DNA from: Bugula neritina
Taxonomy: Eukaryota; Animalia; Bryozoa
DNA length: 64,000 bases
NCBI GenBank assembly: GCA_964035545.1
Contig: OZ037766.1
Coordinates: forward strand, 2,108,001 to 2,172,000
Reading direction: 5' to 3'
The stretch's first letter is position 1. The number at the start of each line of letters is the position of its first letter. Of this stretch, positions 10,401 through 36,600 are shown piece by piece. A program made the translations under genes and the position numbers. Under the pieces are notes generated by a model. The model was not told where the DNA came from and did no database searches. It saw nothing but the letters and a program-made list of their open reading frames with translations.

Positions 10401-13400
10401 CATAGTATACTTGTAGTGACATTTGAAGTCTTGCTTGTTGTGACACTAATTCGTAAATGAAAAGCTTTAAGACACAGAATTAAAACTGAAATATAGTGTG
10501 TATACTGAAATAAACTTTGATGATTTTAGTGTATTATTATAAAGCCACTTCTAAGTTATAAATAGGCAATCTATTTGCTCATTTAAATATTGTGCTAGAG
10601 TTTTGTTATTCTTATAACACATTTTACACCTATAAACTGCAGTTTCAAATTTGTTACAGGTACAATATATTTTTAACTTAAGTAATAACTAAAAAAAATA
10701 AAATAGGTGTTTTTCAAGAGTTGATTTTTTTTATAAATATTAATTTTGATTCCATATTAATTGCACAATCATAAAATTATCTCAATTATTATATCAAAAA
10801 TATTAGGCCAGTAGCTTAGCTATGCTAATTTGTGCAGGACATGTGTGCATGCTGATTCTTTTCAACTTGCTCAAAGTATTACGTAATGCTTCATTAAATA
10901 GATGTTTAAACATTTATTTGATACCTTATAAAACATCAAAAAAAATTTCTCCTCTATTTAATAATTAGTTCAATTGTATATGTAATTATATATTTAGTGC
11001 AGTAAGTGTATTGTATAGTTAATATTTCCCCTTCAGAATAGTATGTTAATGGCTACTTAAATAAATAAAATCTAATCTGATAGATGACTGTATCCCCTTT
11101 CAAGGGTGCTCTGATATCTAATTATCAGTAGGATAGACTGATAGTCAAGTGATCAGCAATTACTCTTGAAATCTCATGTATATTAGAGATAACCAGTCGA
11201 AGGTTGTACATAACTAAATAATAGTAGGTGAGTATAAAATACCCTTAAGAAATTTGAACAATGGAACAATCATAGCATTATAACATTCTCTACAATTTAC
11301 TGAGCACTAAAAAATTTAGAACTTTGATGATCAATAAATTCAAAAAAGCTGTTTTGTGGTTTGAATTATATAGAAAATATTATATAGATTTGAATTGCAA
11401 AATTTATGTTCAATTTATTGCTTAACCTTTTGACTCTAATATATTTTTGTAAAACTCAGAGAAACATTTCTTGTTTGGCACAGATGAGTAAAAGGCACAA
11501 TCTACATTTAAAATATAAAGTAACCATAACTTTGACTTGTTTTGGTGTTGCGACGTGTATTTTGACAAGTGAAGCCCAATAGCTTTCAAACAAAAAATCT
11601 GGTTATATGGGGGGGGAGACAAGATTCATCTGCTCTATAAAAATTAGTGACTACCAAACTTAGCATAAATCCTACAGAATCTACATGACCAACTTACCGG
11701 AGTCCCATCTCCAGGCACCCTCACTGTTTCTGTCATTGGCTCCAATCCAGTAACCATTTTTACCAAACCCAATGCTCTGTATTTTCCCCACCAAATACTG
11801 CTGAATAGCCCAACTTCCTACCTAAACACACGAGAATAGAATGTTATAACTGTATGCAGAAAATATAGACTATTAGTAATGATTCACTCAATAAACTCAT
11901 TAGCTGTCAATATATGCAAATGGAAATAAAAGTTAAAGTATTATAATATAGTGTAAGAGTTGTCTGCCCAAGATGATCGCCATGAGCTGTTAACTGTATT
12001 TGGCCTCGAATCAAACTGATCACATGACTTGAGAATTAGAGAATGATAACCTTCTCACCTATGACTCATAATTTAAGCCATCAACAATGGCCACGTAAGA
12101 AAGTCCTATACTATACAATAATACGTCAGCCCTCATACTTAGAGTATGGCTGCCCTTGTGTAACATAATAACTTTTATGATAGTATATACTGAAATGATG
12201 TATAATATTTTATGAATTAAAGACATTACAGTATGTGCTGCTGTACATGCTGTTATTATATGATGGAATTGCATATATATTACAAGGCAGCAAGTCACAT
12301 GACCGAGTGACATCAGGTTGGCACATGGGTTGATTGTCTCAAAAATGCAGCATCTGTTGACCAACTGAGAACGTGTTTGAGTACAGCAATGCAGGCGTTG
12401 ATGGGTAGCAATACTTGAATACAACTTTCGATTACCTTCAGCTTTTTATCAGCTACAGCTCGCAAGTAATTGATAAATACTGTTTATGTTTAGCTATTGA
12501 CTGGGAAACTCATTTGCACACTGGTCACAACATGAGAAAATAAGCTTAACTTGATACTAAAAGTTTAATTTAATTTTATAATCATAGGCTGACACCAAAA
12601 ATAACTGTTTATAATTTGAATTGCAATTTCTATATTACTCATAGGCATAATTTGTTTCATTTAAAAAAATTATATGTGCAAGTTATTTAAAATTGGCATG
12701 TTTATCTTGAACTACATACAGAAAGATCATGCATGCAACCATTTTAGAATTGTTATGCATATCATAGGTTTAAAGCTATTTGATACATTTTCTTGGTTGT
12801 GAGCTGAGAGAACCTGCTACTGAGGAAAGTGCGGTGATGGAGAAAGGAAGAAAAGCCTGTGCTTTAAATTATTAACATATTAAAACAAGTTACCTTATCG
12901 AAATGAATCTCAACCCAGAATAAAGTTTAATAAAGTAATAAAAGAATTTAGGCTATTAAAATGTCTCCACATACTGCTCTTAATTGATGCTGCAGTGAAT
13001 AATATTCAGAGAAGATTGATGCTGTTGATTGATACATTGAATATTTCTTATTTTAATTAAATATTGCGAGCCTATAGGTACGGAGGAGATAATTCCCAAA
13101 CACTAAAAACAAAAGATGCTTCTATTGACCCTAATGGGAGAACCTACAACTGCATAAATAGAAACCAGGCATGAAACAACAACCCCAACTTCCTGCTATT
13201 GAACTCTTTATAATAGACTTCTGAAGTTGTCTTACTATAATAATATATTTAGTAATTACAGGTTACAGATGTGCAGCTACTCACTGTAACCATGTGACCT
13301 TGGTGACCTGCACAGTAGGTGTTAGCCTCTGTCCAGTATCTCTCAGTGTCAACGAAATGGTAGCATTTGCCAAACCGAGGCTCTGCGTACAGATAGCCAC

Positions 13401-14931
13401 TGGAGACGTCAGGACACCCAACAACTGCAAATAACAATAGAAAGAGAATTCTAGTTACTATTGTTGACTGCATTCTTTGAAGTTTTAAGATTAATTCAGA
13501 AACAATGCATATCACAATTAATTGGGGTTTTAGTATCAAATTTACAAACAGTATAAACAATAATAATATTAATTTAAGGCGGTATTCATCAAATTGTAGT
13601 GAGTATAAAGTTCTCTATACCACAAAAAACACCAACAATTACTTTATAGTATCTTGAGAATTCTATTTATTATCATATTTTAGCCAATCAGTTTCTTTTG
13701 TATAACCACACTATAATGCTATTGTAGCCTATATGTACATAGATTAATATATGTATTATATTATGCACTAATATTATGTTAATGTATGTTCTATATACTA
13801 TACTACTATTATATACTGAAATTTAATAGATATTTCGTACATGTACTCATGCATGTAGCCATTCTCACAACACTCCCATATTATATCTGTCATTTACTGT
13901 ATCATTATTCAACTAGCAATTTCTCACATGTATAACATCAATAATTCCTTATTGTGAAGAGTGTATAAGTATATCTACAGGCATGTCTAACCAAAGGTTA
14001 AATGTGGTTTAACTATTGCCATTGTTTTGTATATCTGATGAATGATATTAGATATTTTTTAGACATTTTTGACGTTATCAGCAAAAGCTCAGGACTGTCT
14101 TATAGTAAGTCTCTGATTGTGTGGCAAAATACATTCAAGGAGTGAAGTTAAACAATATTATATTATTTGGGAAATGTGCCTACCAATATTCTATGCTAAC
14201 CTTGTGCTATAGAAATGCCCAGAATGAGTGCATTCTATGCTAAAGCTGTGCTACAACATAATTGGATTTGAAATCAAAATTTTTGTTAGAGTTTTCATGA
14301 TTCTAAAACAACTATAATAGGTAGCTTTATTTGTGTTGCAGCACAGGTTCCATGTTCCTAATTGAGTAGATTAGTAAGAAGCTAGTATTGTTGCTATAGA
14401 AGTATAATTGTTGGCAGCAACTATTTCATTTTCAGCTAGTATAGGTTCGACATCCTAACATAATTTCATTTCAGTAGTAGGTTTAAGGAAGCTGCTAGAA
14501 TGTATAACAGTTACTCATTATACTCTACTGAGGATGGGTTTGTATTAGTTATAAGTGATAATAAAGCAATAAAACAACTCTGTCTGTGCTTGTTATAGCT
14601 AAGCACTACAGTTTTCAAAAACCTCAAAAGTTTCTTTTACTTTGCTTAAAGCTATATCTTCCTTTCTCTCAGTTTATTGTACAATTATACATATTATCTC
14701 TATTTCTTAACACGTTATACAATTATATAAACAATTTGCAGGAGCTGTGAATAATATAAACATTTTATTTACACGCTGCACCCAACTGTAGCTTTGTGTT
14801 TCAGCCTCATATCAACTCTCAAATGTATGTAACATAGGATATAGTCTATTTCTCTCACCTTGTGCTTTAGCTTCATAAACAGAAAATAGAATTAGGCAGA
14901 GTATGTTAGCAGACCAAAGTGTTATCTCCAT
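7428..14931 (-). CDS. Type-I transmembrane C-type lectin receptor with mucin-like stalk (signal peptide - CTLD - Thr/Pro stalk - TM - NPxY tail)
   Basis: 8 exons, all GT-AG and in frame: 14931-14859 ([24 protein letters not shown], signal peptide), 13424-13285 (CYHF...WTEANTYC), 11821-11698 ([16 protein letters not shown]), 10391-10224 ([11 protein letters not shown]...DCA...WMDYPC...FICE), 9619-8621 (PTTTTTT repeats, Ser/Thr-rich), 8399-8346, 7923-7848 ([25 protein letters not shown]), 7563-7428 (RKKSRR...QYNNPLYED...*). Confidence 0.92.
9170..9610 (-). repeat. Coding mucin-type tandem repeat, P(T)n units of mostly 7-8 codons
   Basis: (ggtgtggtagtagttgtagtt)-like units on the + strand translate to PTTTTTT in lectin exon 5. 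Confidence 0.95.
9826..10093. mobile_element. Probable MITE / non-autonomous DNA transposon in a lectin intron
   Basis: Imperfect terminal inverted repeats: left cattcacacttgccgtaacg...atatcagccatttt, right aaaatggctgatgttt...cggtacggcaagtgtaaatg. About 270 bp, no ORF. No target-site duplication identified. Confidence 0.5.
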
Positions 14932-16749: not shown

Positions 16750-17350
16750 TTCGTAGCTGCATACTCATACTCATACTGACTGATAGTGATAGTGATACTC
16801 AATGAATATGACAATCTCATACTTTGATAGTGATACTCATAGTCATAGTGATAATCATGGTCATAATAATACTGATAGCGATAGTCACAATGAGTGCCAT
16901 ATCAATATGAATATCCATAATCATACTCGTAGTGATAATATTATTTATATTTATAGTACTAGTAGTACCCAATCTCATACTGATACTCGCAGTTAATGTT
17001 ATACTGATAGTGATAGTGGTAGGCATAACACAGAGACCAACTGTCTGACAGCAAATCCATGCTGATGCTAAAAATTAACCCGAATTTCATAGTCATGGCG
17101 ATAGGCATAGTGATTGGTATAGTCATAATGATTACGGTAATGATAATCATAAGGCATCACGCAAAATGCAAATACCTGATAAATGTTGCTAGTTAGACTA
17201 AAGGTAAATAAAAATTAATGTAAATATAATACTTATGCTATAATAGCAGTTATACCTATAGACTATAGTTATACTTATAGTATAGTAAGTAAACAAAAGC
17301 TTCAAGTATATTTACCAGTGATAGTAATTCTAATAGTAATAATAGTAGTA
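16750..17350. repeat. Low-complexity (ata/gat/act) tract in the putative first intron of TIR gene A
   Basis: Degenerate tri-/hexanucleotide repeats such as gatagtgatagtgatactc. Confidence 0.7.
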
Positions 17351-17680: not shown

Positions 17681-20600
17681 ATGGCTTCCAGATCTCAACA
17701 TGTCTCTACAAATAATTCTAATCCTGATCATCATAGTAATACTACTAGTACTAGTAAGATTGAAGTTGGTGATACTCCAGTTGATAGTCTGGCTGTCTCA
17801 ACTAGCGCCAATATGTCAGATGCTAAATCCGAGAAGACAAATCAGAATTCCTCTCTTCCACAAATATCTCCTTCCAACTCAGTCGGTCTTACTCAAGTAC
17901 CAGCTGCCCCATCTTCATACATTACAAATGCAAACCTTGAATTAACTAAAACTGGGAGTCATATTCATACTGATACGAAATCCAACATTCAGACTGATCA
18001 TCGTTGTGAGAAAGTTGTGAACTCTAACACAGAAAATCTGTTTCAATCTGTGTCTGAAATGCAAACTAGTAAGGATAACTCGAATTCCCATGTTGATTCA
18101 GGAGTTATGTTACCCAAACGAATTGCTCAGATGAATGAAAGTGATCGAAAACTCTGGTGTTTGACAGATGGTAATGCAAATCACTGCATTGAAGATCTTG
18201 GATCTTTAGTTCAGACTCTGGTGGCAGAATTTTCTTTGGAGAGTAAAGCTTTTCAAATTTACTCTCCACTAGTTGAGTAAGTCTTGAATTAAAATTATTT
18301 GAAGTTTATATATATTACAATAATTTTTAGTAATGCGGTATGGATGTTTTAGAATGATCTAGAAAGTAGCTAACTTCCTGTCAGATATGCATTAGTAAAA
18401 GTAGCAAGTTCAATGTCAACTCATAATATGTATTTTTGAATAAATTATGTGACTGTTGGTATATTTTTAGAAGTACGAATGTTTCGGGTAAATTTGTTTA
18501 AAGTTTGTTTAAATAGTTTAACTTTTCATATTTTAGACTGGTCGGAAACGCCCTTTTGCTTGCTAAATGCTGTGAACAGAACCGTCAAAAGGTAGCTGAA
18601 CTCTTAGTTGAAAGCGGATGGGTCGAGTTTCTGATGCTACAAACAGAGACTCTACTTAAACAAGTTGATCTGGCAGCAGACGGCTGGAAAGATGACATCA
18701 TCATTTCTAAAACTAACATACTCCTACAGGGACTGACAACTCTGACATTTATAATTAACCAGAGTAGTAAAGAAACTGCGTGTAAATTGAAAAACAACTT
18801 GGCAAAGGATTTATTAAAACTTTTAAAACATAAAGATTTGGAAACTGCAACTTCTAACTCACTCGAAGACCAAGTATTCTCTAGGCTTATGCATTTATTA
18901 GAAGATTTGGTTTTAGCAGAGGCGTTCAGTCAAATGATGTTAAACGGGGTTCAGTTAGAGGTTGAAGAGTTGATGTTGAAATATCTGGCAGGTACTCAGT
19001 CTAAAGATGTACGTCTGCTGAGTCAACATATTCTGTCCCACATCACTCATGATGACACAACTCCTCGGCTTTCCATTGAATACATGAGCAAAGCTCAGCC
19101 GACAGACGGGTCTCTCAGCGACTTCATCAAGTCTGCTCAGCACGTTGTGAAGAGGCTGGAATCCATAGATTTATCTGTTCACATGTCTAAGCCTTGGCGA
19201 ATGATTTGGGATTTTAGGTAACTTTGCTATATTCCAGTGCATGCACTTTTGACAGTGTATGGCAGGTCCTCTCTGGTGATCTCATGTACTTGGTTAAATA
19301 AATTTAGTTTATTTTCACACATGCAGATTATTTTACTTGTAGATATAATTTTTCACGTACCAAATATTTTTGCAGAAATTTTTAAAACAAATTGTCAAGT
19401 GATGCAGTACTCATCCGCTCATAATTTGTTAATATTTAATGTACAGGTTTATGGAACGAATAGTTATCTTCTCAACGTACGAAAAGTGTTCATCTGATGT
19501 TCGCTCCAGTGTTTTCCAGGCAGTCGTTAAGGATGGTACGTGGTTCAGGTTTATTTCAACATTTTACCAAAAGTTGATGTTGAGTTTGGATCACTACAAC
19601 CCTGAAACAACTGACCATCTGTCAGCGTTAGTGCTGGAGTCAGCTTTGAGCAATTTGCTCTCAGCTCTCCTAACCATTCACAACGGGACTGACGTCTGCA
19701 AAGAACAGGAAGTGCAGCAAATGACCTTTGACCTCTTTCACGGTCTGTTAATTCAGCAGTTGCAAAATCCCATTATGATAGAAGCTCTTTGCGCAAAGTC
19801 AGAGAAAAGCGGAATCTATGCTGTTTTAGCCAAGATTGGTTACTCGATGGTAGTTATTATTTACAACTGGACGTATCACTTTGACTCCTGTATCGCGACG
19901 CTGCGGGCCAAAGGAATGATGGCTGTTGCGAGGAATATTCGTGAAAACGCACAGAATTCCGAGTTGCGTACCATGGCTTTGCTGACCATGGCTTATATGG
20001 TGGATGAAGACAGTGAAGACGATCATGAAGAGAAAGATCTGCTTAAAATGACAGACTCTGAACTGACCTTTCTCATAAAAGAGCTGGAGAATTCAGCAGG
20101 ATCTCAAGTGAAGTATGCCTACCACCCGAATGAACTTATTGATGCTTTGACTCGAGTGGCTGTCAATGATCACAACAAGTTAAAGGTCATTGATCAGGGC
20201 GTGCTGCCTCTTCTCGTGCAGTTCCTGGACGCTGACAAACATGCTCCCGAGTATCAGGTCGCTGCTGCCAACGCTCTCTGGAACTTGGCTTTCACAGATG
20301 AGAGCTGTCAAAGAATAGTCAAGGAGACAGGGTGTGTTGAAGGTGAGATGGGTTTTATTCAAATTATTTATTTAGTAACTTTTTGAAAATTTATTTTCAG
20401 TTGTGTGGACCATGAGCTGTTATATAGTAATAGATGAACATGTGATAAAATTATGAATAGTTTGGATAGATTTACTCCTTTTGTTAACTTTTAATTACCA
20501 ATTATGTAAAGTAAATGGTTAAAGACATGACTAGTATGAGGTCTATTATAAAGTCTACTATGCTATAATATATACTATACTCTATAGTATAAGTGTCATA

Positions 20601-23600
20601 CATGTTTCCTTTATTTAGGATTGTCCAAACTGAAAGCCTCTAAACACGAAGACGTGCGGAAGGCAGTGGAAGGTGCTCTGTGGCAGATCCAAGAAAAACA
20701 CCATCAGAATTCTAAGACAGGTGCTTCTTCTGTTCATCAAGTGATTTTTTTATATTTCCAACACTCGTTGTAGTGTCAAAGAAACATTTCAATCGTTGCA
20801 TATTAATAATAGACTTCAACTCTTTGCAATGCACCCAACCTTTAAACTGCTGTATTGTGATTATCTTCCTTGGAGACACAAGCTTTTATGTTGAGTAGTT
20901 TCAGAACGACTTTTAAGTTATGAAAAAGTGCTGATGACTTAACAACGAATAAAGTTTTGCCTGGTGTAACATTTACACCGACAACTGGCAAGTAACAAAT
21001 AAATCACTTGGATCGTTGCTTTAAATTGTAGCAAGAACTTTTTTTAATGAAATTTTGTCAGGCAAGCATTACACACATTGAATTTATTAAAGATTAATTC
21101 TAATTTAATACCAAAATAAGTTAAAATCAATTGCTTGATTTGTCGTGTAGTGACTGTAAAGAAGCAGATAATGCTAAGTTACAATCACCAATCAGCTGAG
21201 CAAATGTTGAAGATCAGGAATATACTGACCAGTCATGGCTACAAGGTCTGGATAGATGTGGACCGTATTACAGATGGTGAGTTGTTGAAACCTTACACTT
21301 GCTAGAACTGTTTGTATGTTAGTAGATTTCACAATTGTGGCTAACAGCTGGTTATATAAATGAAATATTAGTAATTAAAACAGGAAAACCGATATCGAAA
21401 TCGTTCTTGCTTTATCTAATTTATTTTTTATTCAAATGCATGTTTTCAACCACTGAATAGTTATAAATTGACTCTTCTAATTTTTTTGTTGACAGTTTGG
21501 ACACATAACTGTAAATTTTGGTTATTTTCCACAGTTTTGGAGTTTACTTTTGTATTTTTAGGGGGTTCGATGTTGGATGCTATGAGACAAGGGATTCAAG
21601 AATCGTTTTTGGTGCTCATTTTTATCAGCGAAGCTTATAAAAACAGTGTTTATTGTAGAGCAGGTAATGTATACTGTAGTGTATGTAGTGTATACTGTAG
21701 TGTATACTGTAGTGTATGCTGTAGTGTATACTGTAGTGTATACTGTACAGTATACTGTACTGTATACTGTACTGTATACTGTAGAGTACTGTATATCGTC
21801 TACTGATTTCAGAGGCTGAGTATGCATTTGCGCAGAAGAAGCGATTCCTGCCCATAGAAGTTGACGCCAACTACAAGCTCAATGGCTGGCTCAACGCTCT
21901 CCTGGGTGCCAAGTATCGGTATTGTCTGACCAACCCGCGAAGATATGACATGGAGGTGAAGGCCATTCTGTCTAAGATCAGGCATGTTATTGGTCCTGGG
22001 AGCAATGGAGATAGTGAGTATCGCCTCAGACTTGTCTGTATTCGTGCTGTGACATGCATACTTACACTTTACTCTTGATTCCGCTAGTCACCATATTTGT
22101 GTATCATTTAAGCTCCATCCAAAATTTTGAGAATTTAAGAGTTGAGTTGAAGCATCACCACACTATGCTTGTACTTAGCATGAAAGAGTTCTAATGAAAT
22201 TTACTAGTTTTTGGCTGTAGTCTGTCATAAGAAAGTTTTTTATTTCTTCTATTATATTTAACCGATGTAGGGAAGAAGTATCGGCTTCCGCCACCTATCC
22301 CAGAAGCCCACTCTCACAAGGATGATTATGATGTAACTCCTGAAGGCTATCTGAACCCCCATCCACCCCCTCTGCCAAAACCTGCTGAATTCCACTCTCA
22401 GAAAATCTCTTCCCCGGAACTGCCCAGTCCTTTTGCATCTCCTGGGGCTACACTTTCAACTCCCTCCAACCACCAATTGAAATGCTCTTCGTGGACTTCA
22501 CAGCAAGTTGCTGATTGGCTAGACTCGTCTAATCTATCTCAGTTTAAAGAGAGGTAACGAGTTACTAATACCAGTTGAATTGTGCATTCAGTTAGGTGGT
22601 CATAATGAGCACATTCTAGAATTTTCCAGCTGAAAAAGTGTTAGGTTTTTGTATTGCTTTCTGAGTTGAGTTAGTGTTAATAGTTCTTGAAACTGGTATC
22701 AAGTTAACACTTAAACCTGTTGGCAAGGTCATTTAAAGGTGGCACTGATTGCATATGACTTGGTTTAGCAGTTTAACAGTAAGTATATGCAATGGACTGG
22801 GCTGCACGTAATGGCATGATGTTATTTGTAAGTCGCTAACTAAAGATATTTCTTATCGTTTACTATAAGTCTTAGTGTAGAGTAAGAAAGATAAATGATC
22901 TTGTATATAGTAGACAAACAGCCATTTTTTTACAGTCAGGAGTTGTCTGTCCTTTAAATAAACCTTCTGTCAAGAAAATAGAAATCTCAAACTAAAACTT
23001 CCGGTTATTAGTTAAAAATACAGGCTGGATAAGAACTGATTGTATGACAATATTGTGGTTTCCCTTTGTGTAAATGTATTTTAATTCTAGTTGAGGAAGC
23101 AAGTCAAAAACATATTAAGAAGTATCAGTGCTATTTCAAACTTGTTAGCAAATTTCACCCGTAATTTCTTTTTCTAGTTCCTTGTAATAATTTCATAGCA
23201 GATCTTTGATTTTTTGATTTGCACTTAATTTCTTGTTCCTTCTGAGCAGATAACTCTAATGTTAAGCAATTTCTGTTCATAAGAAACATGATTTTTTTCA
23301 GCATTAAAAACTGTCAATCTGGCATGTGAAAAGCCCTAAAGATACTTTATATTGTGATAATTATGTGTTTTCTATTGCTTGGAAAACTGTAGATCTTTAC
23401 TTATAGTGTGGTTTTCCCTCTAGAGTTTAAGTTGAGGGTGAGAAGAGTTTGTGTTACACTATAACGACAGTTTATGCTATAATTATTTTCAAACTCTAAT
23501 GTTATTTGAAAAACTTGCGAGTTTGCACAAATGTTGATTTTTAGCATTTTAAAACAATTAATATAATTTAATATAATATAGTTTCAACAAGTCAGACTGT

Positions 23601-23843
23601 TTATATTAAATCTTTTAAACTCCGCTATGCCACTACTAAGTCTATCGTCATACATCTATCATCACATACTCCTTGGTTTCTAGTTTCAAGGAGGTGGACG
23701 GGGAAATGTTAGCTGAACTCGTTCTTCTCTCTCGAGATCACAAAGATATGTTTTACACGCTGCTGAACAAAACATCAGTGACTCATATCGCTGACTTTCT
23801 CAGATTCAGCTGCGCTGCCAGGAAGTTATACATGCAGCAATAG
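17681..23843 (+). CDS. ARM-repeat - TIR - SAM protein, paralogue A (~1048 aa)
   Basis: 9 GT-AG exons in frame: 17681-18276, 18537-19217, 19447-20342, 20619-20720, 21151-21276, 21562-21663, 21813-22013, 22271-22553, 23684-23843. ARM signatures: NKLKVIDQGVLPLLVQFL...AAANALWNLAF and VRKAVEGALWQI. TIR_2: IMLSYNH...GYKVWIDVD...AMRQGIQES..VLIFISEAYKNSVYCRAEAEYA...FLPI...YKLNGWL..LLG. SAM: WTSQQVADWL...L.QFKESF.EVDGEML. AATAAA at ~24206. Confidence 0.9.
21664..21800. repeat. 12-bp minisatellite (gtagtgtatact)n filling the intron that splits the predicted catalytic Glu codon of TIR gene A
   Basis: About 10 near-identical units between the donor at 21664 and the acceptor at 21812. Confidence 0.9.
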
Positions 23844-24643
23844 TCAGCCCTAGTCCACTAATTATAAAGTTGTCCTATCTTTCAAATACCTGATGGTTTG
23901 TTTAAATCTTCAGTTGTTGGTTCATAGCCATTTTTCAACCTTTACAATAGTCACTGCGCCAGTTTATTTATGCTGTATCTTAATTTAAGAGTTTTTTTTA
24001 AAAGTTAGTTGATAGAAGTACATCTCACAATAGTGCTCAAATAAATATAGGATTCTATCTTTTTATAGTGTAATGATCTACAATTGCCAACTGTTTCTGT
24101 GTGTTTGACATTTTAAATTATTTTTGTATTTGATTTTATATTTCAGACATTCTTTTAGATGTTTTTATCACATATATATTTTATTTTCATATCTCTTTTT
24201 ACCCAAATAAAATGTATTTAAATAAACCTAATCTATGCACATCCAAATACCCACAGTTCTATTACTATAATAAAATTTTCTGTGGAACATAGCAAAAGGA
24301 TTTTGTTGAACAATCTAATATGGCGATTTAGGTAGATCTACAACTATAAATCTAGTTGTGAATATATTCTTAGTGTCCTAACACCTACATCAACCGTAAC
24401 CAGGTTGTTACAGCATGTTAGGACTTAAAAATATTAGCACAATTCTAGTAAATAGAGCAAATGGTTTAGGATAATTACAAATGTGTAGCAAATAGTGAGG
24501 TTGTGGCATTAATGTGAATATTATATCATAACTTGTTTATACTAATACCGTAACAGTTTGGTTGTGGCAGCTGTTAAATTGAACATAAAGCTATAGTTAT
24601 CTTCTCCTGTGCTACAACGACATCCTTTTTTTCTTTGAACAAC

Positions 24644-24657
24644 GTTGCCTAGGCGTC
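24644..24657 (+). promoter_or_regulatory. X-box-like motif GTTGCCTAGGCGTC upstream of TIR gene B
   Basis: Two mismatches to GTTGCCTAGGCAAC. It lies ~150 bp upstream of a plausible first donor (caag|gtattg at 24801); an acceptor ttgcag at 25357 precedes the ATG at 25368. Confidence 0.35.
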
Positions 24658-24969
24658 TAGAAGTTTTAGCGTCTCGTAGGAGGATTCATCGTACAAACCG
24701 TTAAAATAACTCTGAATAATATGTAAAACACGAACTATAGTTCCCGTGACAATGCACAAACATAATAATATTGTTGTTGAGGCACATGAGACTTTTCAAG
24801 GTATTGCCGTTTTCCATTTAACGTCTGTTTATTCGTGTAAATGCTTAAATTATGATGGCTTTGGCGTCTAAAACCACTTTTTTCTATGAAACTTGAAAGC
24901 TATCATAATTTCATTCATGTGAGCTATTTTACTATGATAGTTACAACGTTAAAAATATTTACAACCAGT

Positions 24970-25150
24970 TGCTAGTAGTACTACGTCTACTAGTACTAGT
25001 AGTAGTAGTACTACACTGTCACTAGTCACTAGTACTACTAGTACTAGTACTACTAGTACTACTACTACTAGTAGTTGTACTACTCTGATAATTATAATCA
25101 TAATGTCTAGTCACTAATGATGAATTACTATCATTATGATTATGGTTAAT
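24970..25150. repeat. (act/agt)n low-complexity tract in the putative first intron of TIR gene B
   Basis: Runs such as tagtactactagtactagtactac. Confidence 0.8.
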
Positions 25151-25367
25151 ATTATATTCATATTGCCTATCTTTGCTATTTTGTACACAGCATGAGTGTA
25201 AAAGGATAAAGTCTGCCATTTTGTATTTTGCAATCAAGTTTATATTCTGACGTGATTTAAATAAGTACAATAACCTATCTATAATTTTCTTTAAATTTTA
25301 ATGTATTCTAACCTTGGCCAAAAGCAAATAAACTCATTTTATATTAAAACATTGCAGCCAACCAGCC

Positions 25368-28300
25368 ATGTCAAGATCATCAGGTTCAGGCTCATCATTG
25401 CCACCATTAGTTGATGAAAGCAAAAAGTCTCATGTGCAACACAAAACAAAGAGTCCAGATTATGCTAATAAAGAGTTTTCTAACTTCACATGTGCTGCTA
25501 CTACTGGTGTGTTATCTCAACCAATGATTCCTGTACCTCCGCCACCTCCACCACCACCAGCTTCTTCTTCTTTGCCTTCTGCGTCATACGACCCGGAAAT
25601 TACCAACGCTTTACGGGCACAAGTTCGAAGACGTCAGAATGTTGATAAAAAGCAGTCAGAAGATATAGTTTCTTCTGGCTCCTGCAACGCCTCTCAGTCA
25701 TTTGATCCGTCCCTTACAAGGGTTCCAGTTCCTCCCCCTATGCTTATACGAGACGTGTTGTGTGCCCAAATCCAAGGAACAGTCATGAACGCCAAACAAC
25801 AACAAAGTCTTAGTGGTTTACACAAGAGATTTACTCCAAAGTATATGCGGAACTGGGTGTTGCAAGAAGACAACCTGACCAATTGTTTAGAAGATGTTGG
25901 CTATGCAGTGAGAACATTGAAGGCAGTGCAAGGGGCATATGCTAGCGGAGCTGAAGATTACAAGCCATATTTTAGGTATATTCACAGTTATTCATTCTTT
26001 TGTAAACTTTGATGTCTTTGTTGTAGACTATGTAAACTCACTCTCTCAGTTTTTTACTCACAGAAGTTTATAGTCGCTATCCCTGTGAGAAACGCTTGAT
26101 GGAAAGGGTTTTTGTTAGAATGGGCTAAGGACTTATTTAAATGAGGCACAGGAGCAATTATGACTGGATGCTCTTCCTAACATCACCAATGGCCTTTGTC
26201 GGGGTTCGAACCCATGACTTCGTGTTCACAAAGCAAACACTCTAACCCCTAGACCACGGCTGCTCCCTTGTTGTAGACTATATATTTTTTACAAATAACC
26301 AACTTTACCAGACAGTGTATGTATGCAATGTTTGACTAGTTTAGTTCTATTGAATGAGCATTCTTCTAGTATATGCCAGCTGATACAGTCAGCTGTTGAA
26401 TGTTGATATGTTAACTTGCTATGTTACCTTAAATTTTATATTTTCCAGGTTAATTTATGAGTCGGTAGTACCTGTACGTGATGACGTTTCACAAACTGCC
26501 AAAGAAAAGATTATGCAAGAGTTACTTGGCTGTGGTTGGGTGCAGGTGATTAACGTTTACTTAAAGTTGCTGATTGAAGATGTCATAAACCCGCCTACAA
26601 ACAAAGAAGGTGCAGCACTTCACTTGGGCGGGCCTTGTGATAATGTGGTTAGCGCAATAGACACCCTGCGTCACCCAATTCACTTGTTTTCTACAGATAT
26701 TGTGACACAAATCTTTGATCTGTTCTACAACATTGTCATTGAGAGCCTGCAAGCTCTGAGCGTTGTTGAACTAGCACCCGATTCTCGAAGAACTGCCCCT
26801 AATCGACTTATGAATGCTTTGATTAGTGTGCTGCTTGATTTTCTACAAATTGCCGAGATGCGCCGGTTGAAGTTTAAAAGTTCGGATACCCAAGATTTGG
26901 AGACTTTGCTTCAGAAGTATGTAGTGATTCTGTCAAAGACACCATTACAGTCTTTGTGTCTAACAGCTTTGAGTTTTCTCGCTTCGGTAGAAGATGAAAT
27001 TCAGTCCCGCTTTTCTGTTCGTTTTCTACAAACTACTAAACTTACTGATGACAACAAAGATCAGTTTATGAAAGATGCCTTATTTGTGGCTCAATATTTA
27101 GCAACTACCTCGTTAGAAAATCATATGAAGCACCCATGGAGATACCAATACGAGTTCGGGCAAGTATTACAATTGATTCATGAAAATGATTTTGTATTGA
27201 ACTGAACTGTTTTGAAACCCTTGATGCTGTCTTGTATTTAAATAATCAATTTTAGAACTTTTCATATAAATTATAAAGACTAATATATTGCAATAATAAA
27301 GAGTCTTGTAAATTTGGTGATTCAGTAAATAAAAATTGTTTTTTGTTTGCCGTATGATGTTTGCTTCTGGTATTCTAAAATTTTGTTTTGTTTATTATTT
27401 CAGTTTTGTAACTCGATTTGCAACTGGCAAGCCATCAAAAAATTGCTCGATTCAAACTCAGCTAAGTGTATACGAGGCTATGATAAAGGATGGGCTTTGG
27501 GACACATTTATCACAGACTTGTATAAGAAGGTGATGGACTATTTGGACGCTAATGGCGATGACAAGTTGCTCAACCCAACTATTAACACAACTCTAGTGA
27601 ATATCTACTACGGATTTCTGCTCACTACGAATGGTATTGACATTTTAAAGAACAGCTCAACTCTACAAACAGTTTTCAATCATTATCATTCCTTGGTCGT
27701 CAGTCAGCTGCAAGTGCCGAGAGTGATTCAAGTTTTTCACGATGAGGTTTTGATGGGAAGCGCCCTCTATGCTCTAGGCAGAAGTATGATGATGATGGTT
27801 CATAACTTTACGTATCGTCATGAACCGAGTATCCCTGTGCTGAGAGAGCTAGGTATGATTCGCATTGCCAGGGATATTCGAGCAAAAGCGGACATATCTA
27901 CTGTGAAGACAACCAGCTTGCTAATAATAGCCTATCTAATAGATGAAGGCGAAAACAAGGAAATGATGAAAATGGCTGACTCAGAACTGAAATATTTAAT
28001 AGCCGAGCTGGAGAAGTCATTGCTCTCGGCAACGGCGTCTATCTTCGGGCCACAAGAGTTGATAGAAGGACTTACAAGGATTGCCGTTGTGGATGAAAAT
28101 AAATCGAAGTTGATTGACCAAGGAATACTACCTCTTCTGGTAAAGTCTCTCAAGAACAGCAGGAAGTATGAGTCGAGTCATCAGGCTGCTGCCGCCAAGG
28201 CTCTGTGGACGTTGGCTTTTAATGATGGCAGTCGACAGCGAATAATTGAGGAGAAAGGCTGTATGAATGGTAAGCTGTATAAGATTGTTTATCACTGCAA

Positions 28301-31300
28301 CCATAGTTTTAGATTTGTACTGCGATGACTTCATGCGATGCAGTATGCTGTAGTCAGACATACTACTACCTAAAGCTTGCTAGTTTAAAATACTGGATTT
28401 TAGCAGATGATTATAACATGTTATATGAAATTTTTTCTGACTATGATGTGTAAATTCTTAGCATTGAACAACTTGAAAGACTCTGAAAACCCCAAGCTGA
28501 AGGAAGCCGTGGCCGGAGCTCTCTGGGAACTGGGAGGGAAGAGTAAGCGAGTGGAATCTAGCAACTTCTTTGGTGAAAGAGGTATTTTATTTATATATTG
28601 AGAATTCTTTAGTAAAGAAGGTATTAGATTTATGATTCATGAGTTTTTTTTTAAAGAAAAACAAGTTTGTTTGTAACCTATAGGTATTTCATAAACTCTA
28701 CTGCCTTTAGAAAAAACCATCTGCTCTTTGAAGAGCCGGAATATTCTAGAGATCATATCTAAACAAGTTGCCCAGTAAAATAAGGATTGTGTGTGCATTC
28801 TATTTTTAGCTGAGAAGCATATTATGTTGAGCTACAACCACGAGGCTCAGAATGAAGTCCTCAAAATGAATAATATGTTAAAAAACCTGGGCTACAAAGT
28901 TTGGGTGGATGTAGAAAAGATAACGGAAGGTAAGCCAGACTGCTGGCATTTCTATTTTTAGAATAATTTTATTTTTTTTAATTATATAAAAGAGTATGTT
29001 GTTGTGATGTTAGAACTAATACATGTTGTTGTTTTTTATGCCTGCATGGGGAGAGAAGTGCGAGATTTAACAAATTAAGTGATATTTGCTAGTACGTGTG
29101 CACTAATTAAAAAAATATTCCAATTGGCAGAGTTTGTGTGTTGTATGTAGAGTTGTCTTCTTTTGCAGAAAGTATTATTTCTAATACTTTGAAAATTTAC
29201 TATTATATATAGACATGCTTCAGTGTGTAGACTTAAATTTATATTACATCATTCACATGTCTGAACACTTGTGTTTAGATGGTGACTGTTTTCCTAGTGA
29301 TAAAAATTATCAATCATTACAATAGTTTTGCATACCTCACTACGGTATTTGCTTACAGTAACATATGCTTGTGTGATTATATGCATACAGGGACATGAAA
29401 TATATGCTTACTGTAGCATGTAAAAGTTACATTATTACTCATATCTGTATTTTAAATGGTTTATCTTGTTTATATGCTTGGAATGATTAAAATAGACAAT
29501 TTATTTGATTAATAATTTAATTTTAATTGATTGATTGATTGATTTATTACATATCACAAACATGACAACACGTTGCAAAATTCAGTGTAAATACTGGCTA
29601 TAATAAGTAGGAATGAACAAAAATAAGAGAAAAAATCAAAACTCTGTTGGATTATTTAAAATAAAAGCTCATTTAAAGTATTTACAAGATGTCGCAAGAA
29701 GCTATCTCTGCCCCATGCCCCTCTATATTTGATGGTTCGATATCTTCCAGAAGGGCATTGACTAAGAAGTTGTTGATGAAATGGTCATTGTCTGTTATAT
29801 ATTTGATGGCAAGTTCTTTAGTGAGTTTCTGAATGTGCAAATTAATGTTTAGATACTTAATTCCGAGTTTTGAGCAATCTTTGAGAATTCTTCGAATAGC
29901 CTTTTTATCACTGGCATAGATACAAGTAAAAATAGTAGGTAGACAATAGGCGATGCGGGACATGATTAATTTTTCTTGTGAAATTTCAGGAGGCTCCACC
30001 CTAGAGGCCATGGCTGATGCAATAGAAGGATCTTATTTGGTGTTAATCTTCTTTAGTGAGGCGTATAAGAAAAGCGCAAACTGCCACTCAGGTGAAGATC
30101 TGCAGCTTTTACTATCCTCAGTTATAGAGGTCATTGTGTGTGAGAGTTATAGAGATCATTGTGACTTACATTCTGCCTTATGTATAATATATTAGACATC
30201 GATGCTTTAGCTTATTTGTAGTATAATAGTAGTCATTATGTATAATTCACAGCGATGTCTATATGAAAGACTTATTATATCACTCTTCGTTATAATATAC
30301 AATAGATGTCGTTGGAAGTTGTATTCAATTGACTGCGAGTGACTTTTCCTTAGCTTGAGTTTTGGTCTGGGATTCAAGGTCAGAGTTTGACTGCCATATT
30401 ACATGAACTGACAACTTCCCATGCTGTAATATCTACTAGAACCAATGCTACTATATTATATATTATTCAGTCTCATGTCTCAGTGAAAATTGACATCTTT
30501 TGAATTGTTTTACTGTATCAGAAATAAGAGTAACTTTTAAATAAGAGTAACTGTTGAAACCGCATTTCTTTTATATTAGTAAGTTTGTAGTTTGCCCGAT
30601 TCACTGGTTGGTTTTATTTGTTTCATGTAAGTTTCACATAAAGTTTGTTACATTACCTCCTGCACATACTTTTTGTGTTTAAACATTGTAGTAACTCATT
30701 ATTTGCCTGAGAACCAAGCTATACATGTTTATTTGTGATGCTATTACAAAAAAGAATCTTTGTTTTTTGTAGAGGCGGACTACGTTTTTGAAAAGAGGAA
30801 GCAGTTTTTGCCGATACAAGCTCAGCCGGGCTACAAGCCAGATGGGTGGCTGGGGATGCTGATGGGAACGAGATACAGGTACACCTTAGTCCGTCCTGAC
30901 AGGTACGAGGCTGAGATGAGTAAACTGCTTCAACAAATTCAACAAATCACCAGCAGCGAGGTGGGGAGTGCTGCCACTGTAGAGAGTTCTACTGCCACCG
31001 CAACTAGTATAGTTACTCCTAGCATAGCTTCTGGTAAGTTTATTCTGTCTCTAACTACAATATAGACTATTATATATCAGAATATTTGAATTCCATTTGG
31101 CATGTAATATGCTTTGTACTCAAAAACAAATATTTCAAATTGTTTTTGTCCCAGAATGCTTCATTTGCATAATTATACAGTCATTTGAGCGCCAAGTTGT
31201 GAATTATTATTGGTTAGTTCAGTACTTGAAAATTTCATGCAACATGTATGTTATGTGTGTTTACTTTATAACAATAATTGTAAATGTAGTTTTCAATTTA

Positions 31301-32316
31301 TTACATTTTCACTGATTATCAAGCTACTTATACTTTAAAATATATTGTATTTTATATTAGGCAATGCAATTTTGTAATGCAATATTATATCATATTATAT
31401 TGTTTTCTGCATGATATCATATAGCATAGTATATTGTTATGCGCTTCTTTGTACCTACAGATGCACTGATTTATAAAGACAAAATATAGTAACTGTTTTA
31501 AAATGTGGGAAAGTGAGTTACATGACATAAAAATAATATACAAAAAATGTTAGCATCAATTAGAATTGTTTATTACAGGACAATACTTATCACTGGCTTT
31601 ATCTACATGTTTACATGTTGTTTTCACTACTTCAATCTCACTAAGCTTGTATGTTTCTATCCATGACTACAGAAGCTGCTCCAGTGTTCAAGCCACCTGT
31701 TGCAAGAGACTTTGAGTGTAAAACCTGGACCCATCAGAAAGTGGCGCAGTGGCTAGATGAAAATGATCTCACACATTTGAAAGAAGTGTAAGTTATCTTC
31801 TCTTGTAAAGAGCGGACAAATACCTCTAAGATGTTTATTGCTTTGACTATTTACTGCCTACCAATGTTGTGTGAAAGTCTAAACAAATTTTATATGGCAA
31901 AAGGAAAAGTCTTGCTTCTGAAACGCCTGCATAAATTTTTTATCAGAAGCATGCAGTGCAGTTGATCATATTAAAAACATTCATTTCTATTTATTTATTA
32001 TAAACTTTTATTTGTGGAAATGGAGAGTTTCACAGGTTATATATTATTCTCAAGGTTTAATGTTTTTTAAAAAATATTTCTAAGTTTTACAAAAAAAAGC
32101 TTCCATTCAAACAAAGCAAAAGCACTCTGCTCAACCCTTCAGGCGAGTGACTTTTCATATTCCAGGATGAAAGATTTTGACGGCCCCCTCCTTGTTGAAC
32201 TCGTAAAGATCTCCACTGATGTCTCCACGCTTTACGGACTTCTTGGCAAAGTTCCAGGTATCAGCTTAGCTGACACACTTAAACTGGGTCGAGAAATACA
32301 AAAGCTCTTCAAATAA
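25368..32316 (+). CDS. ARM-repeat - TIR - SAM protein, paralogue B (~1017 aa) with a poly-Pro N-terminus
   Basis: 9 exons with the same intron phases as gene A: 25368-25975, 26449-27159 (GC donor), 27404-28269, 28462-28581 (alternative donor at 28572 possible), 28810-28929, 29990-30091, 30773-31033, 31673-31787, 32166-32316. ARM: NKSKLIDQGILPLLV...AAAKALWTLAF. TIR: HIMLSYNH...GYKVWVDVE...AMADAIEGS..VLIFFSEAYKKSANCHSEADYV...YKPDGWLG. SAM: WTHQKVAQWLDENDL...DFDGPLL. Confidence 0.9.
26032..26267 (-). mobile_element. tRNA-derived SINE, copy 1 (intron 1 of TIR gene B)
   Basis: The minus strand begins gggagcagccgTGGTCTAGGGGttagag (A box) and contains GGTTCGAACCC (B box). It is flanked by a 14-bp target-site duplication ttgttgtagactat (26018-26031 and 26268-26281). 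A second copy lies at 49697. Confidence 0.88.
29527..29975 (-). mobile_element. 5'-truncated non-LTR retrotransposon (CR1/L2/Rex-like 3' end) in intron 5 of TIR gene B
   Basis: The minus frame IAYCLPTIF...DKKAIRRI...DNDHFINNF shifts into CPSGRYRTIKYR...RDSFLRHLVNTLN, which resembles the PSGRRY...NSF C-terminus of these ORF2 proteins. It is followed by AATAAA and an (ATCA)n tail at ~29527-29550. Confidence 0.7.
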
Positions 32317-33630
32317 TAGAACATGCAGGTTCTCTTTTGTAGAAATTTATTAACGTTGCCTGTTATAAATTATATATAATTAATGCATTTTTGATGCAAA
32401 TACTTTCATAATAATTATATACTATTCAGACTAATCATGCATTCAGCTTGGTATAAAGTTTTTCATGTTTTTTCAATGAATTTTATTAGAATTATATTTT
32501 TATATGTAGATTTACTATTTCATATGTACATTGTATATATGACAATTTTTTTCAAAGTAGCTGCGTATTTTTCATATATTTTTTGACAATATTTTTCAGC
32601 TACTATATAATTTTTATTGAAATAATTTTTTCTTCAACTACAATAATCTTGCGCTGTATTGCAATTTGAGCAAATTTGTTATTCTAACTGATAAATTGAT
32701 CACTCTAAATATTGACACAACAAATTATTTAAATAATTTAGAATTGTCAGATTTTAATAGATTAAGCAAACCTGTGTTGTAACATAATAAAACATGGCAG
32801 GTGGTACAACAATCAAACGCTTAATAAAAAATATGATATGAAATTATTGAACATTTAGTTTATTGTATAATTAATACTTTTACATAATAAAACTATATAA
32901 ATGTGTGCAAAAGAGTAACAAAATAATAATAATGAGCTTGCCCAGAGGCAAGAGAACCTATCTTAAAGTTACTGCAAAAGGTCAGATCCACAAAAATACA
33001 AATGAAAAAACATCAACAGTTTCATGAAGTCACAGAGTAGAAAATCAGTTGAGACAATTAAAATAACGCAATTGGCCACGAATTGATGGGTTGTGTATTA
33101 AACTTTAAAACATTTGAGGAGTAAAACATAAAGTCTAAGTATTCGCTTTGAAAAGGTTAATAAAATAAGTTCTACTAATATATAAATTGACTAGTGCCGG
33201 TGTGATAAAAAGCATCCATTAAAGCAATGATAAAGCTACTTATAATAAAATACAATTATTATGCTACAGATAAAAGAGCAAGCAAGTAACACTATGGAGG
33301 ACACAATTCCAAATTCAAGTTTTGTAAAAAGTACAGCAATTGGTTTATTTGCCTAAATACGACATAATAAAGTATAGAACAAGAAAGTTTGATAAACAAA
33401 ATCTAAGTTAGAAAGGCAAGTAATACAGGCTTCATATATCAGACCCGTTAAGTTGGCCATCTAAGTAGAGTACAACAGCGGCAGCAGTAAAAGTACAAAA
33501 ACAAAGCTTACAAACAACAACGGTTTTACTGCGGTTAGAGTTGTCCCTGTACTGAGAAAACTTAGATACTATACGCCAGAATTTCAGTGTGGTAGGAGCA
33601 GCTAGTGAAAGGTTTGACATCATCATTAGA

Positions 33631-36600
33631 TTACTCGTAACTCTCTCTAATAGCACAGCATAGCAGCATAGAGAATACCATGCCTATCAGCTGAAACAAC
33701 CAAACACATCATTGTCATGTGTCGAAAGATAAACTGGTAGATACATGTATATTGCTGATTCATTAAAATACTAACCAGGTATTTCCTAAATGTATACATG
33801 TACTGCTATTACAATAAACTAGTTAAAAAAGTTAACATTAGTGTATATTTTCTAGAAATTCAAGGTATGCAGCTGCATGTAGAGTTAAGAGAAGTTAAAA
33901 CATTTGGTTAAATGATGGCTAAAACCTTTCAACTAACAAAAATATAATATATTATACAACAGAGAACATAACTCCAATTATTCCCCAAAAGTGTGCCATA
34001 TTTCTTAATATCTGATTAGATAGTAACATAAAGATATGGACTGCAGCAAAGTAAGGCTGGGAATCCTACAGGGCCACCCGCACACACAGATCAATAGCTA
34101 GGGGAGGATTTCTGGCTATAGTTGAAAATAGTGATAACAAATAGTAGACACAATCTATGTTATGTATATACAATAACCAAGGACTGCAACTCCAGAACTG
34201 TAGGGAGCAATAAAATGGATTTAAATTCAATTTGCTCCTTGACATAGTACTAGATCCAACCCTGTTGAGAATATCAAATGACGGGTGGTATACCCCTTCC
34301 GACACTACGTGAAGACTGAGTGTAGGCAGCATATCACAGCATCACGTACCATGACGCAGCCTGTGCTGATGGACACGGCAGCCAGGATCACTCCGTAGTC
34401 GTTGATGAACTGCTCGGCCTCTGCTTTACACCCGGGAGTACCGTCTGCTGCCACAAAGGACTGTGTGGGATGTTGAGGACAAGACGCGGGTATGGCATCG
34501 TGCACCTGAAGAGAGAGAGAGTAGTAAACTGTATACTATGATATGTTACAGTTTCATAAAACTGTAAAACTGAAACAGGTGGTGAGAGTGAGATATTTTC
34601 TGCTTCTCCACCAAACTATGTTAACAAAATAAACTATCACATGTGTAGGTTATAGCCGAATGTAGGTCACATTATACCTGAATGTAGGTCACATTATACA
34701 TGGATGTGGGTCAAACTATACTTGGATGTAGGTCACATTATACCTGAATGTAGGTCACATTGTACCTGAATGTAGGTCACATTATACCTGGATGTAGGGC
34801 ACATTATACCTGGATGTAGGTCACATTATACCTGGATGTAGGACTTGTACTCTGTAAGATAATCTTCCAGTCCACAGCAGCCCAACGTCTGCTGAATCAG
34901 GTTGACGAGGTTACTGCTCTGAGGGTCGTATGTCTGAATTTCCTCCTCAAACTCTTCTATTACCAGTTCAATGAACTGCAATACAATACAATACAATGAA
35001 CTGCAATACAATACAATGCAATGAACTACAATACAATATAATGAACTACAATACAATAAACTACAATTTAATGAACTAGATAAAAAGATGCATTAAAATA
35101 TAATACAATACAATGAGTTGGGCAATGGGTGAGAACATATTAAAAATATATATAATTGTGAACAGACTGTCTGTCTGTGTGTCAGTAATAAGGTTTAAAA
35201 CACAAGTAGTCAAATCAAGTCAAACCATGGCTCAAAGTATATATAAATTATCAAAAAAACCAACATTTCGATCATTACTGAAAAATAAAACTTATTGCGA
35301 GCAAAACTTATGATTTCTAGAGTTTATAGCCATCACAGAGTTTGTATATAGTTAAATGCATCATGGTATGGCAACGGGGTGAGATTTTTGGGTAATTTTG
35401 TTCTGAAAAGACAATTCCAAGCAACTGATATTTATTCCAAAATACGCTGTAATTTACCCTCAATGTAAGAACTACCCCTTCTTATATTTAGTTCTCAGCA
35501 GAAGGTTAACATGTTTATATTATACTGTAAACATTTAGTATAGCACAGCCATGGTCTTTGGAATAACAGTTACAATCAACCAGCGCCTGGTTTGAATATG
35601 TTTATAACTCCATTCATCAGCTTTCGTACAAGAAGATTCTTATATTTTATTATAGGAATAAACAAATACAAGATGGCTCTTGTACCAAGAAAATGGCAGC
35701 ATGATTATGATAGCGTCAGCAGCAAACATCACAGACAGCCGAGAGCAAAGTTCAATATAAAGCAGTTCACAGTTACTATGTAGTGAAATAGTTGTGAAAT
35801 ATGAGGCAATACAGTATCTCGCATTGCAATCAATACTCATGGCTATACATTTCATCTCTTGAAATTATAGACTCGATTGTTAAATATTATATGCAGTGCG
35901 TAGAGACTCAAACAATAGTGGCAGCGAAATAGCATCATAGCTTTAAATATTTCCCCTCCTTATTATATATATCTCTAGGGATAGACTTGGGCATTGCGAA
36001 TGACACAAAGTTTATTAATATTTAAAACTACGTACAGCTGCACTTAATAAGTAACGTACACTTGCATGTGCTTACCTTTTATATACATTTATAGCATGTA
36101 CGCACACCAAACATACCACACTTCAGCACTTACAGCGTAACATGTTAATTTTACTTGCCACTAAGTCAAATATGTAACTTACACCTGCATGGACTTACCT
36201 CATCTTTCCTGATGAAGCAAAGAGTGCCAATAGCTATCAGTCCAGCAAAGAGTATGAACATACATACAAAGAACTGTAAATAGAAACATAATATACAATA
36301 TAATAATAGAATATAATATAACATGTATTCAATTTCTGATGGAATGCAGTTACATTCCGATTACAATTGGGGAATAGAAGTGCATGAAAGTAAAATATTC
36401 AACAATGATTGCACTCAACAATGATAGTGAAGATTGTGGGTGAATTTGACCAGGAGATATAATCAATTCCCCAGTAACTAGTAGAATGTAACTAGTAAAT
36501 GGTAGGCATGTGGAAACCAAAGGAAATAATTAACATTTCTACAGTCACTACACCTACATCTATCAATCACCACCTAACACAGGATGTCATGGGACTAGCT

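Follow-up and report, generated by a model that had tools for sequence, protein, structure and literature searches.

Two adjacent genes of the bryozoan Bugula neritina encode ARM, TIR and SAM domains. The question raised by this locus is whether it holds a rearranged SARM1 or a separate design, and whether its products act on nicotinamide adenine dinucleotide (NAD+). The genes, here called A and B, lie in a 64,000-nucleotide stretch of contig OZ037766.1 (positions 2,108,001 to 2,172,000 of the forward strand). We call this stretch the window, and coordinates without a contig name count from its first base. We found that A and B are members of an ancient, widespread and little-studied ARM-TIR-SAM family, and that they are derived paralogues in a fast-evolving bryozoan subfamily whose ARM block is probably doubled internally. 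A family profile, built from 43 database homologues with the window genes excluded, matched A over residues 433 to 1044 (E = 1e-119) and B over residues 465 to 1015 (E = 3e-127), in the order ARM, TIR, SAM. Database searches were done exon by exon, the joined models were compared with fetched homologues, and folds were predicted on database homologues.

Gene A occupies 17681-23843 and gene B 25368-32316, both on the plus strand. Each model has nine exons and a frame free of stops (1048 and 1017 amino acids [aa], respectively), and the intron phases 2,2,1,1,1,1,1,2 are common to both, as the initial annotation had described for a co-oriented pair. The exons and the parts they encode are as follows, with Pfam E values in brackets.

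17681..18276, plus strand: A exon 1, start codon, low-complexity N terminus (aa 1 to ~150) and beginning of the helical region
18537..19217, plus strand: A exon 2, extra helical block (aa 199-426), probably a degenerate duplicate of the family N-terminal ARM part
19447..20342, plus strand: A exon 3, ARM core, aa 426-725 (Arm 1.7e-8)
20619..20720, plus strand: A exon 4, last ARM repeat
21151..21276, plus strand: A exon 5, first part of the TIR, with His771 replacing the family Trp (TIR_2 3.7e-5)
21562..21663, plus strand: A exon 6, middle of the TIR, ending on base 1 of the Glu835 codon (TIR_2 5.9e-4)
21813..22013, plus strand: A exon 7, remainder of the Glu835 codon and C-terminal half of the TIR
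22271..22553, plus strand: A exon 8, Pro/Ser-rich linker and first SAM helices (SAM_2 0.0056)
23684..23843, plus strand: A exon 9, remainder of the SAM (SAM aa ~971-1044) and stop
25368..25975, plus strand: B exon 1, start codon and Pro-rich low-complexity N terminus
26449..27159, plus strand: B exon 2, extra ARM-like block, probably duplicated, followed by the GC donor
27404..28269, plus strand: B exon 3, ARM core (Arm 8.8e-4)
28462..28581, plus strand: B exon 4, last ARM repeat
28810..28929, plus strand: B exon 5, first part of the TIR (TIR_2 2.8e-5)
29990..30091, plus strand: B exon 6, middle of the TIR and base 1 of the Glu843 codon (TIR_2 1.4e-3)
30773..31033, plus strand: B exon 7, Glu843, C-terminal half of the TIR and Ser/Thr-rich linker
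31673..31787, plus strand: B exon 8, end of the linker and first SAM helices (SAM_2 0.05)
32166..32316, plus strand: B exon 9, remainder of the SAM (SAM aa ~944-1015) and stop

All junctions of A and B are GT-AG except the GC donor of B intron 2 (27160). This donor is kept in a 91%-identical sister sequence from another sample, and a GT donor at 27164 was rejected because it breaks the frame. With sister-lineage DNA (Logan SRR4020083) as the reference, the ratio of nonsynonymous to synonymous substitution rates (dN/dS) of gene A against its orthologue was 0.30 (800 codons, p = 5e-16), with 0.63 in exon 1, 0.20 in exon 2 and 0.26 in exon 3. In gene B, it was 0.15 for exon 2 and 0.11 for exon 3. 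Genes A and B are real, intact and under purifying selection; open frames, conserved splice sites and dN/dS values of 0.11 to 0.30 rule out a pseudogene or an artefact of open reading frames. A recent A/B duplication is also ruled out, because DNA similarity between the genes is not detectable by blastn. Their proteins are 32% identical overall (21% in exon 2, 41% in exon 3, 51% in the TIR and 40% in the SAM). The only sequencing run found to contain gene A covers the introns evenly; it is DNA and was rejected as RNA support.

Exon-wise Pfam searches of both genes placed Arm in exon 3, TIR_2 in exons 5 and 6 and, weakly, SAM in exon 8. A SAM-only family profile matched A at E = 5e-13 and B at E = 5e-9. 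The family SAM of homologue P0066, folded alone, had a predicted local distance difference test score (pLDDT) of 95, and its top PDB rows were SAM domains with Z scores of 9 to 10. SARM1 SAM1 headed these matches (Z = 9.9), with PHC3, SAMD1 and DGK-delta tied within 1. In the AlphaFold2 model of a Watersipora protein (pLDDT 81), a helical solenoid leads into a TIR, and a disordered linker connects this to a C-terminal domain that is again helical. In the predicted structure of a homologue, the solenoid is nearest to Vac8, beta-catenin and APC (Z = 18 to 19). These results bear out the order ARM, TIR, linker and C-terminal SAM proposed from the sequence, as well as, on homologues, the expectation that the two ends fold as ARM and SAM. 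The proposed ~600 aa of ARM-like helices stood in part: ARM repeats are present, but the first ~150 aa are of low complexity and a further ~230 aa, those of exon 2, appear to be a degenerate internal duplicate.

The genome holds a separate, normal SARM1 gene (ARM-SAM-SAM-TIR) on the minus strand at C1:~16,665,000-16,672,000 (L020). The A and B TIRs are 13% and 16% identical to the TIR of this SARM1, with a saturated branch in a quick tree, and lack the SARM1-type motifs (the Arg pair after the first strand and the SARM1-specific loop). Homology between the family ARM profile and the first SARM1 ARM exon was not detectable (probability 0.7%, E = 0.085). One survey assigns the SARM1 TIR to a bacterial clade, separate from the remaining TIRs of animals, and does not regard a TIR_2 match as diagnostic of TIR subtype (PMC13142454). 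Could A and B nevertheless have arisen from the SARM1 gene by circular permutation or shuffling? Two observations favour this origin, namely the SARM1 SAM1 match, tied as described, and an intron at the catalytic Glu in both gene types. In SARM1 this intron immediately precedes the Glu codon (phase 0), and in the ARM-TIR-SAM genes it falls one base further on, inside the codon (phase 1). Neither is enough. The coexisting SARM1 gene, the lack of detectable ARM homology in an ARM nearer to Vac8 and beta-catenin, the low TIR identity on a saturated branch, and the placement of SARM1 in another cluster or clade in two surveys have already largely refuted a SARM1 derivation, which we consider very improbable indeed. 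The initial annotation's "permuted SARM1" falls with it. Its alternative wording, a separately assembled SARM-like design, is a fair description of genes whose ARM and TIR are unlike those of the SARM1 in the same genome.

A profile of exon 3 from four paralogues retrieved 656 representatives. Many family members are 550 to 800 aa long and carry Arm, then TIR_2, then weak SAM matches. Among bryozoans, annelids, brachiopods, molluscs and flatworms they occur in Watersipora, Owenia, Dimorphilus, Lingula, Patella, Pecten and Fasciola, and they are also present in acoels. Members were found in deuterostomes (sea urchin, crinoid, Ptychodera, Saccoglossus, amphioxus, Styela and four lampreys) and cnidarians (Pocillopora, Acropora and Nematostella), and a choanoflagellate carries the family TIR. 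Among near-complete fetched TIRs, a redundant set, a SAM followed the TIR in 128 of 148 and stood only before it in 0 of 148; in 99% of the ~148 fetched family TIRs, likewise redundant, Glu occupies the catalytic position. Two mostly chlorophyte clusters of the ESM Atlas align over most of the model (TIR_2 100%, Arm 71 to 84%, SAM 84 to 93%), and their domain order is probably ARM-TIR-SAM as well. The early caution that the architecture might not be unique was therefore justified, since the family spans corals to lampreys in addition to the green-algal clusters. Conservation is highest in the TIR (0.63), similar in the C-terminal ARM (0.47) and the SAM (0.45), and lowest in the N-terminal ARM (0.31). 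Rotifers and Dimorphilus hold many copies, which reflect repeated lineage-specific expansion, a pattern typical of immune genes. A pattern scan of GTDB genomes confirmed no bacterial TIR relatives, a weak negative, and one candidate "prokaryotic" match (P0187) was set aside because it adjoins ASC-channel genes and looks eukaryotic. Several predicted chains from Dimorphilus, Nematostella and amphioxus (P0064 and P0209-P0212) contain the ARM-TIR(-SAM) unit twice, and could be fused models of tandem genes.

Three tandem pairs are present in the B. neritina genome: the window pair, one at C2:2.82-2.84 Mb and one at C1:8.58-8.59 Mb. One more full gene at C4:3.48 Mb brings the ARM-TIR-SAM genes to seven, and TIR exons alone were detected at C3:18.80 Mb and C9:6.41 Mb. 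Because there are three such pairs as well as single genes, the window pair is probably not a dedicated two-gene module. The second C2 pair, with 83-98% DNA identity, arose recently. The Glu at the catalytic position is E835 in A and E843 in B, and the phase-1 intron that splits its codon in both is common to all genome copies. A 2272-base contig (SRR4125604) matches nine genomic exons of the C1 paralogue end to end, with the introns absent. Because this intron-free contig spans nine exons, ARM, TIR and SAM of the C1 paralogue are joined in one spliced transcript. One genomic paralogue is 92-100% identical, exon by exon, to the B. neritina protein KAF6031536.1. At L009 (C1:8.594-8.595 Mb, minus strand), a 284-aa beta-propeller-like exon precedes an ARM-TIR-SAM paralogue. 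This exon is fused to the paralogue in the NCBI model KAF6031536.1 (947 aa) and is absent from the transcript contig, so the fusion may be an annotation artefact. In the L009 TIR (C1:8,589,7xx), Gly replaces the Cys that precedes the catalytic Glu and is 98% conserved in the family.

In a quick IQ-TREE analysis, which left the deep forks without resolution, the TIRs of A, B, L007, L008 and L017 form a long-branch bryozoan clade (Shimodaira-Hasegawa-like approximate likelihood ratio test [SH-aLRT] 100). This clade lies beside three ARM-TIR-SAM homologues (SH-aLRT 93). Within this genome, four genes alone have the exon 2 block (~230 aa), and among the other species sampled it turned up in one. 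It is flanked by phase-2 introns on both sides, and it can be aligned to residues 1-110 of exon 3 (hhalign E = 1.7e-5) and to the family N-terminal ARM part (hhalign E = 1.6e-5). We suggest, with moderate confidence, that exon 2 arose by an old internal ARM duplication (hhalign probability 79%). Three near-invariant features of the family are replaced in A and B: the TIR Trp (91%) by His or Lys and the BB-loop Met (93%) by Ile, and the SAM Pro motif (98%) is lost. In gene B only, the Arg preceding the Glu is His. The Ser-Tyr, Trp-x-Asp, Tyr-Lys-x-Ser, Cys-x-x-Glu and Gly-Trp-Leu motifs are kept. These changes, the long-branch clade and the extra ARM block would fit a changed role, in which the family is enzymatic and the bryozoan subfamily (A, B and the second C2 pair) provides added sensors, decoys or regulators that co-assemble with canonical paralogues. 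However, all four subfamily genes retain the Glu and most of the core TIR residues, and purifying selection is strong. A changed role has a slim chance in our view.

We prefer the reading that A and B are ARM-gated, SAM-assembled NAD+-processing signalling enzymes for innate immune or stress signalling, and we regard its being right or wrong as evenly balanced. The ARM solenoid, with a variable N-terminal end that is probably doubled in the bryozoan subfamily, would bind a trigger and hold the adjacent TIR off. The C-terminal SAM, on its flexible linker, would assemble the proteins, so that the TIRs meet and form active sites. The assembled TIR would cleave NAD+ at the conserved Glu and release a nucleotide signal, for example cyclic ADP-ribose (cADPR), without draining the cell. 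We infer catalysis, product, ARM gating and SAM-driven assembly from the domains and their relatives, and an immune role is suggested by the domain type and the expansion pattern. The A and B proteins are cytosolic. Their Glu aligns with those of SARM1, Cat1 and RPS4. In the PDB, the family TIR profile found its best matches in the enzymes Cat1 (4.5e-9) and RPS4 (6e-6), ahead of SARM1 (4e-3). The conservation gradient is consistent with an effector that stays constant and a sensor end that varies. Retention of the Glu, this gradient, active relatives and repeated expansions support this reading.

The TIR of this family has been catalogued and assayed, as reported in a preprint (Hurieva et al. 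2026, bioRxiv 10.64898/2026.04.20.719644). There, cluster A0A0B7AZE4 comprises TIRs of animals, green algae and a thraustochytrid (at least 595 rows), and in the rows examined almost every one carries the Glu. Among six B. neritina entries is A0A7J7JFK8 (TIR 772-901, Glu844), which is probably gene B, matched by residue numbering alone (Glu844 versus Glu843). A and B belong to this large family, whose TIR had a first, negative test. Four core members, Chlamydomonas A0A2K3E7X5, amphioxus A0A8J9W3M3, gar W5N735 and Phallusia A0A6F9DHT8, had their TIRs expressed alone in E. coli, and these gave no cADPR, 2'cADPR or 3'cADPR and no NAD+ loss (Table S4). In the same table, cADPR was made by neighbouring TIRs with the same motifs, as judged by eye, from oyster (A0A8W8J0Z4, 639 aa, TIR 369-497), herring (A0A6P8EVF3) and Adineta (A0A814VN55). 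The coelacanth H2ZXV5 TIR depleted NAD+ without a cyclic product, several further neighbours were silent, and NAD+ depletion was not seen for most active animal TIRs. The authors caution that activation through oligomerisation is lost when domains are isolated, and that not all products were measured. The initial annotation's statement that no functional characterisation was known is out of date for the isolated TIR. Its "NAD+-consuming" label is weakened: the Glu is at the catalytic position, but the four core TIRs were silent and active relatives mostly made cADPR without depletion. Rotifer cluster rows A0A821I2U9, A0A819WKS3 and A0A820ZM32 (Table S2) are annotated as fusions to Mab-21/nucleotidyltransferase (cGAS-like) or ADP-ribosyltransferase domains; if real, they would support an immune nucleotide-signalling context.

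Several points weigh against the signalling enzyme. The four core TIRs were negative, a catalytic Glu alone is no proof of activity (TLR2 and IL-1R9/10), a single SAM need not polymerise, and A and B no longer have three residues that are near-invariant in the family. Either the core TIRs were silent because they had been cut away from the SAM, as would be expected, or their silence speaks against catalysis; the data do not decide between the two. If A and B were SARM1-like executors of death, assembly would lead to bulk NAD+ loss and to death of the cell or zooid. They have the same three domain types as SARM1, and the best PDB profile match is Cat1, an NAD+-depleting filament. The coelacanth TIR, which has the same motifs, also depleted NAD+. 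However, the core members did not deplete NAD+ in the reported assays, nor did most active animal TIRs, and the SARM1 Arg pair is not conserved. We consider an executor unlikely.

A non-catalytic scaffold or adaptor, in which the ARM binds a partner and the TIR and SAM recruit TIR or SAM proteins in the manner of TLR/MyD88, would account for the four negative TIRs. The structural neighbours of the family TIR are also compatible with it, since they include the TIRs of MyD88, IL-1RAcP and Hydra TRR-2 (Z = 16 to 17), level with the SARM1 TIR (15.7). In its favour, too, a role as adaptors or regulators has been hypothesised for ecTIR-DC proteins (PMC6321704). Against a scaffold, the 99% Glu retention and the pocket residues hold across animals and algae, and the relatives are enzymes. 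The family also occurs in green algae, which are not known to have TLR/MyD88. On this evidence, a scaffold seems improbable to us.

Animal TIR enzymes other than SARM1 are an open question in immune signalling. In this large cluster of animal TIRs the catalytic Glu is nearly always present, yet the core TIRs assayed on their own gave no activity. The C-terminal SAM, mostly missed by annotation, is a direct candidate explanation for that silence. If activity is SAM-dependent, a convergent SARM1-like enzyme would exist in many invertebrates, lampreys and probably Chlamydomonas, a tractable model. We tentatively extend this to a wider proposal, against which we lean slightly. The eukaryote-wide family, from green algae to lampreys, would be an independent SARM1-like design and would give animals a second class of NAD+ enzymes that are gated by an ARM and assembled by a SAM, missed by isolated-TIR screens because the SAM is needed, with the bryozoan sensor diversified by ARM duplication. 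As derived paralogues, A and B are less suited than other members as a starting point for work on the family. A literature search found no paper using "ARM-TIR-SAM". This analysis adds that a C-terminal SAM characterises the family, that the family is independent of SARM1, and that a bryozoan subfamily has three altered motifs and a probable ARM duplication.

Other features lie within and around the two genes. A dispersed ~215-base SINE-like repeat with a tRNA-like core is present at 26056-26269 (B intron 1) and 49696-49910, and also at L007, L016 and L020; ARAGORN called no tRNA in it. A degenerate short tandem repeat in A intron 6 (21667-21790) has a contig depth of 3000-6000 versus ~100, which indicates very high copy number. 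An Rfam microRNA match in this intron is a simple repeat far under threshold and was rejected as spurious. Simple AT-rich tracts lie 5' of both genes (16750-17150 and 24960-25160), and a tract resembling the second is also found upstream of the L007 paralogue. On the minus strand, B intron 5 contains a 109-aa open reading frame (29682-30011) that by appearance is a candidate retroelement fragment. Tetraspanin exons, probably of two genes, lie on the minus strand at ~33400-35100 and 53701-54129 (Pfam 0.0048 and 1e-7). Upstream of gene A, a Thr/Pro mucin-like exon (8559-9632, minus strand) and a C-type-lectin-like exon (13249-13560, minus strand; by eye, no Pfam match) possibly form one membrane lectin gene.

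Cluster A0A0B7AZE4 resembles A and B in its TIR motifs and in an ARM (TPR-clan) region before the TIR. However, the C-terminal SAM is rarely annotated in the rows examined, only isolated TIRs were assayed, and the exon 2 duplication and the A/B motif changes are undescribed. ARM-TIR is a category of earlier surveys of oyster and Aplysia (11 genes; PMC9334734, PMC4346834), and others report a TIR-SAM transcript from amphioxus (PMC2575513) and "SARM-like" coral proteins (PMC10236652). The surveys, including those of ecTIR-DC proteins, count domains and give no function. Gerdol et al. 2017 reportedly defines numbered ecTIR-DC families. Among solved TIRs, the CRISPR-associated Cat1 and the plant TNL RPS4 are the best profile matches, with an aligned Cys-x-x-Glu helix; they have other partner domains, and the similarity does not determine the product. 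SARM1/TIR-1 differs in having two SAMs, whereas A and B have the order ARM-TIR-SAM with one, and its ARM and TIR sequences are unrelated to those of the family. SARM1 is single-copy, whereas the ARM-TIR-SAM family is multi-copy and fast-evolving, and the isolated SARM1 TIR was active in the same reported assay in which the core family TIRs were silent. What A and B share with SARM1/TIR-1 is ARM, SAM and TIR in one cytosolic chain with a Glu at the catalytic position, and a gate-and-assemble logic is plausible for them.

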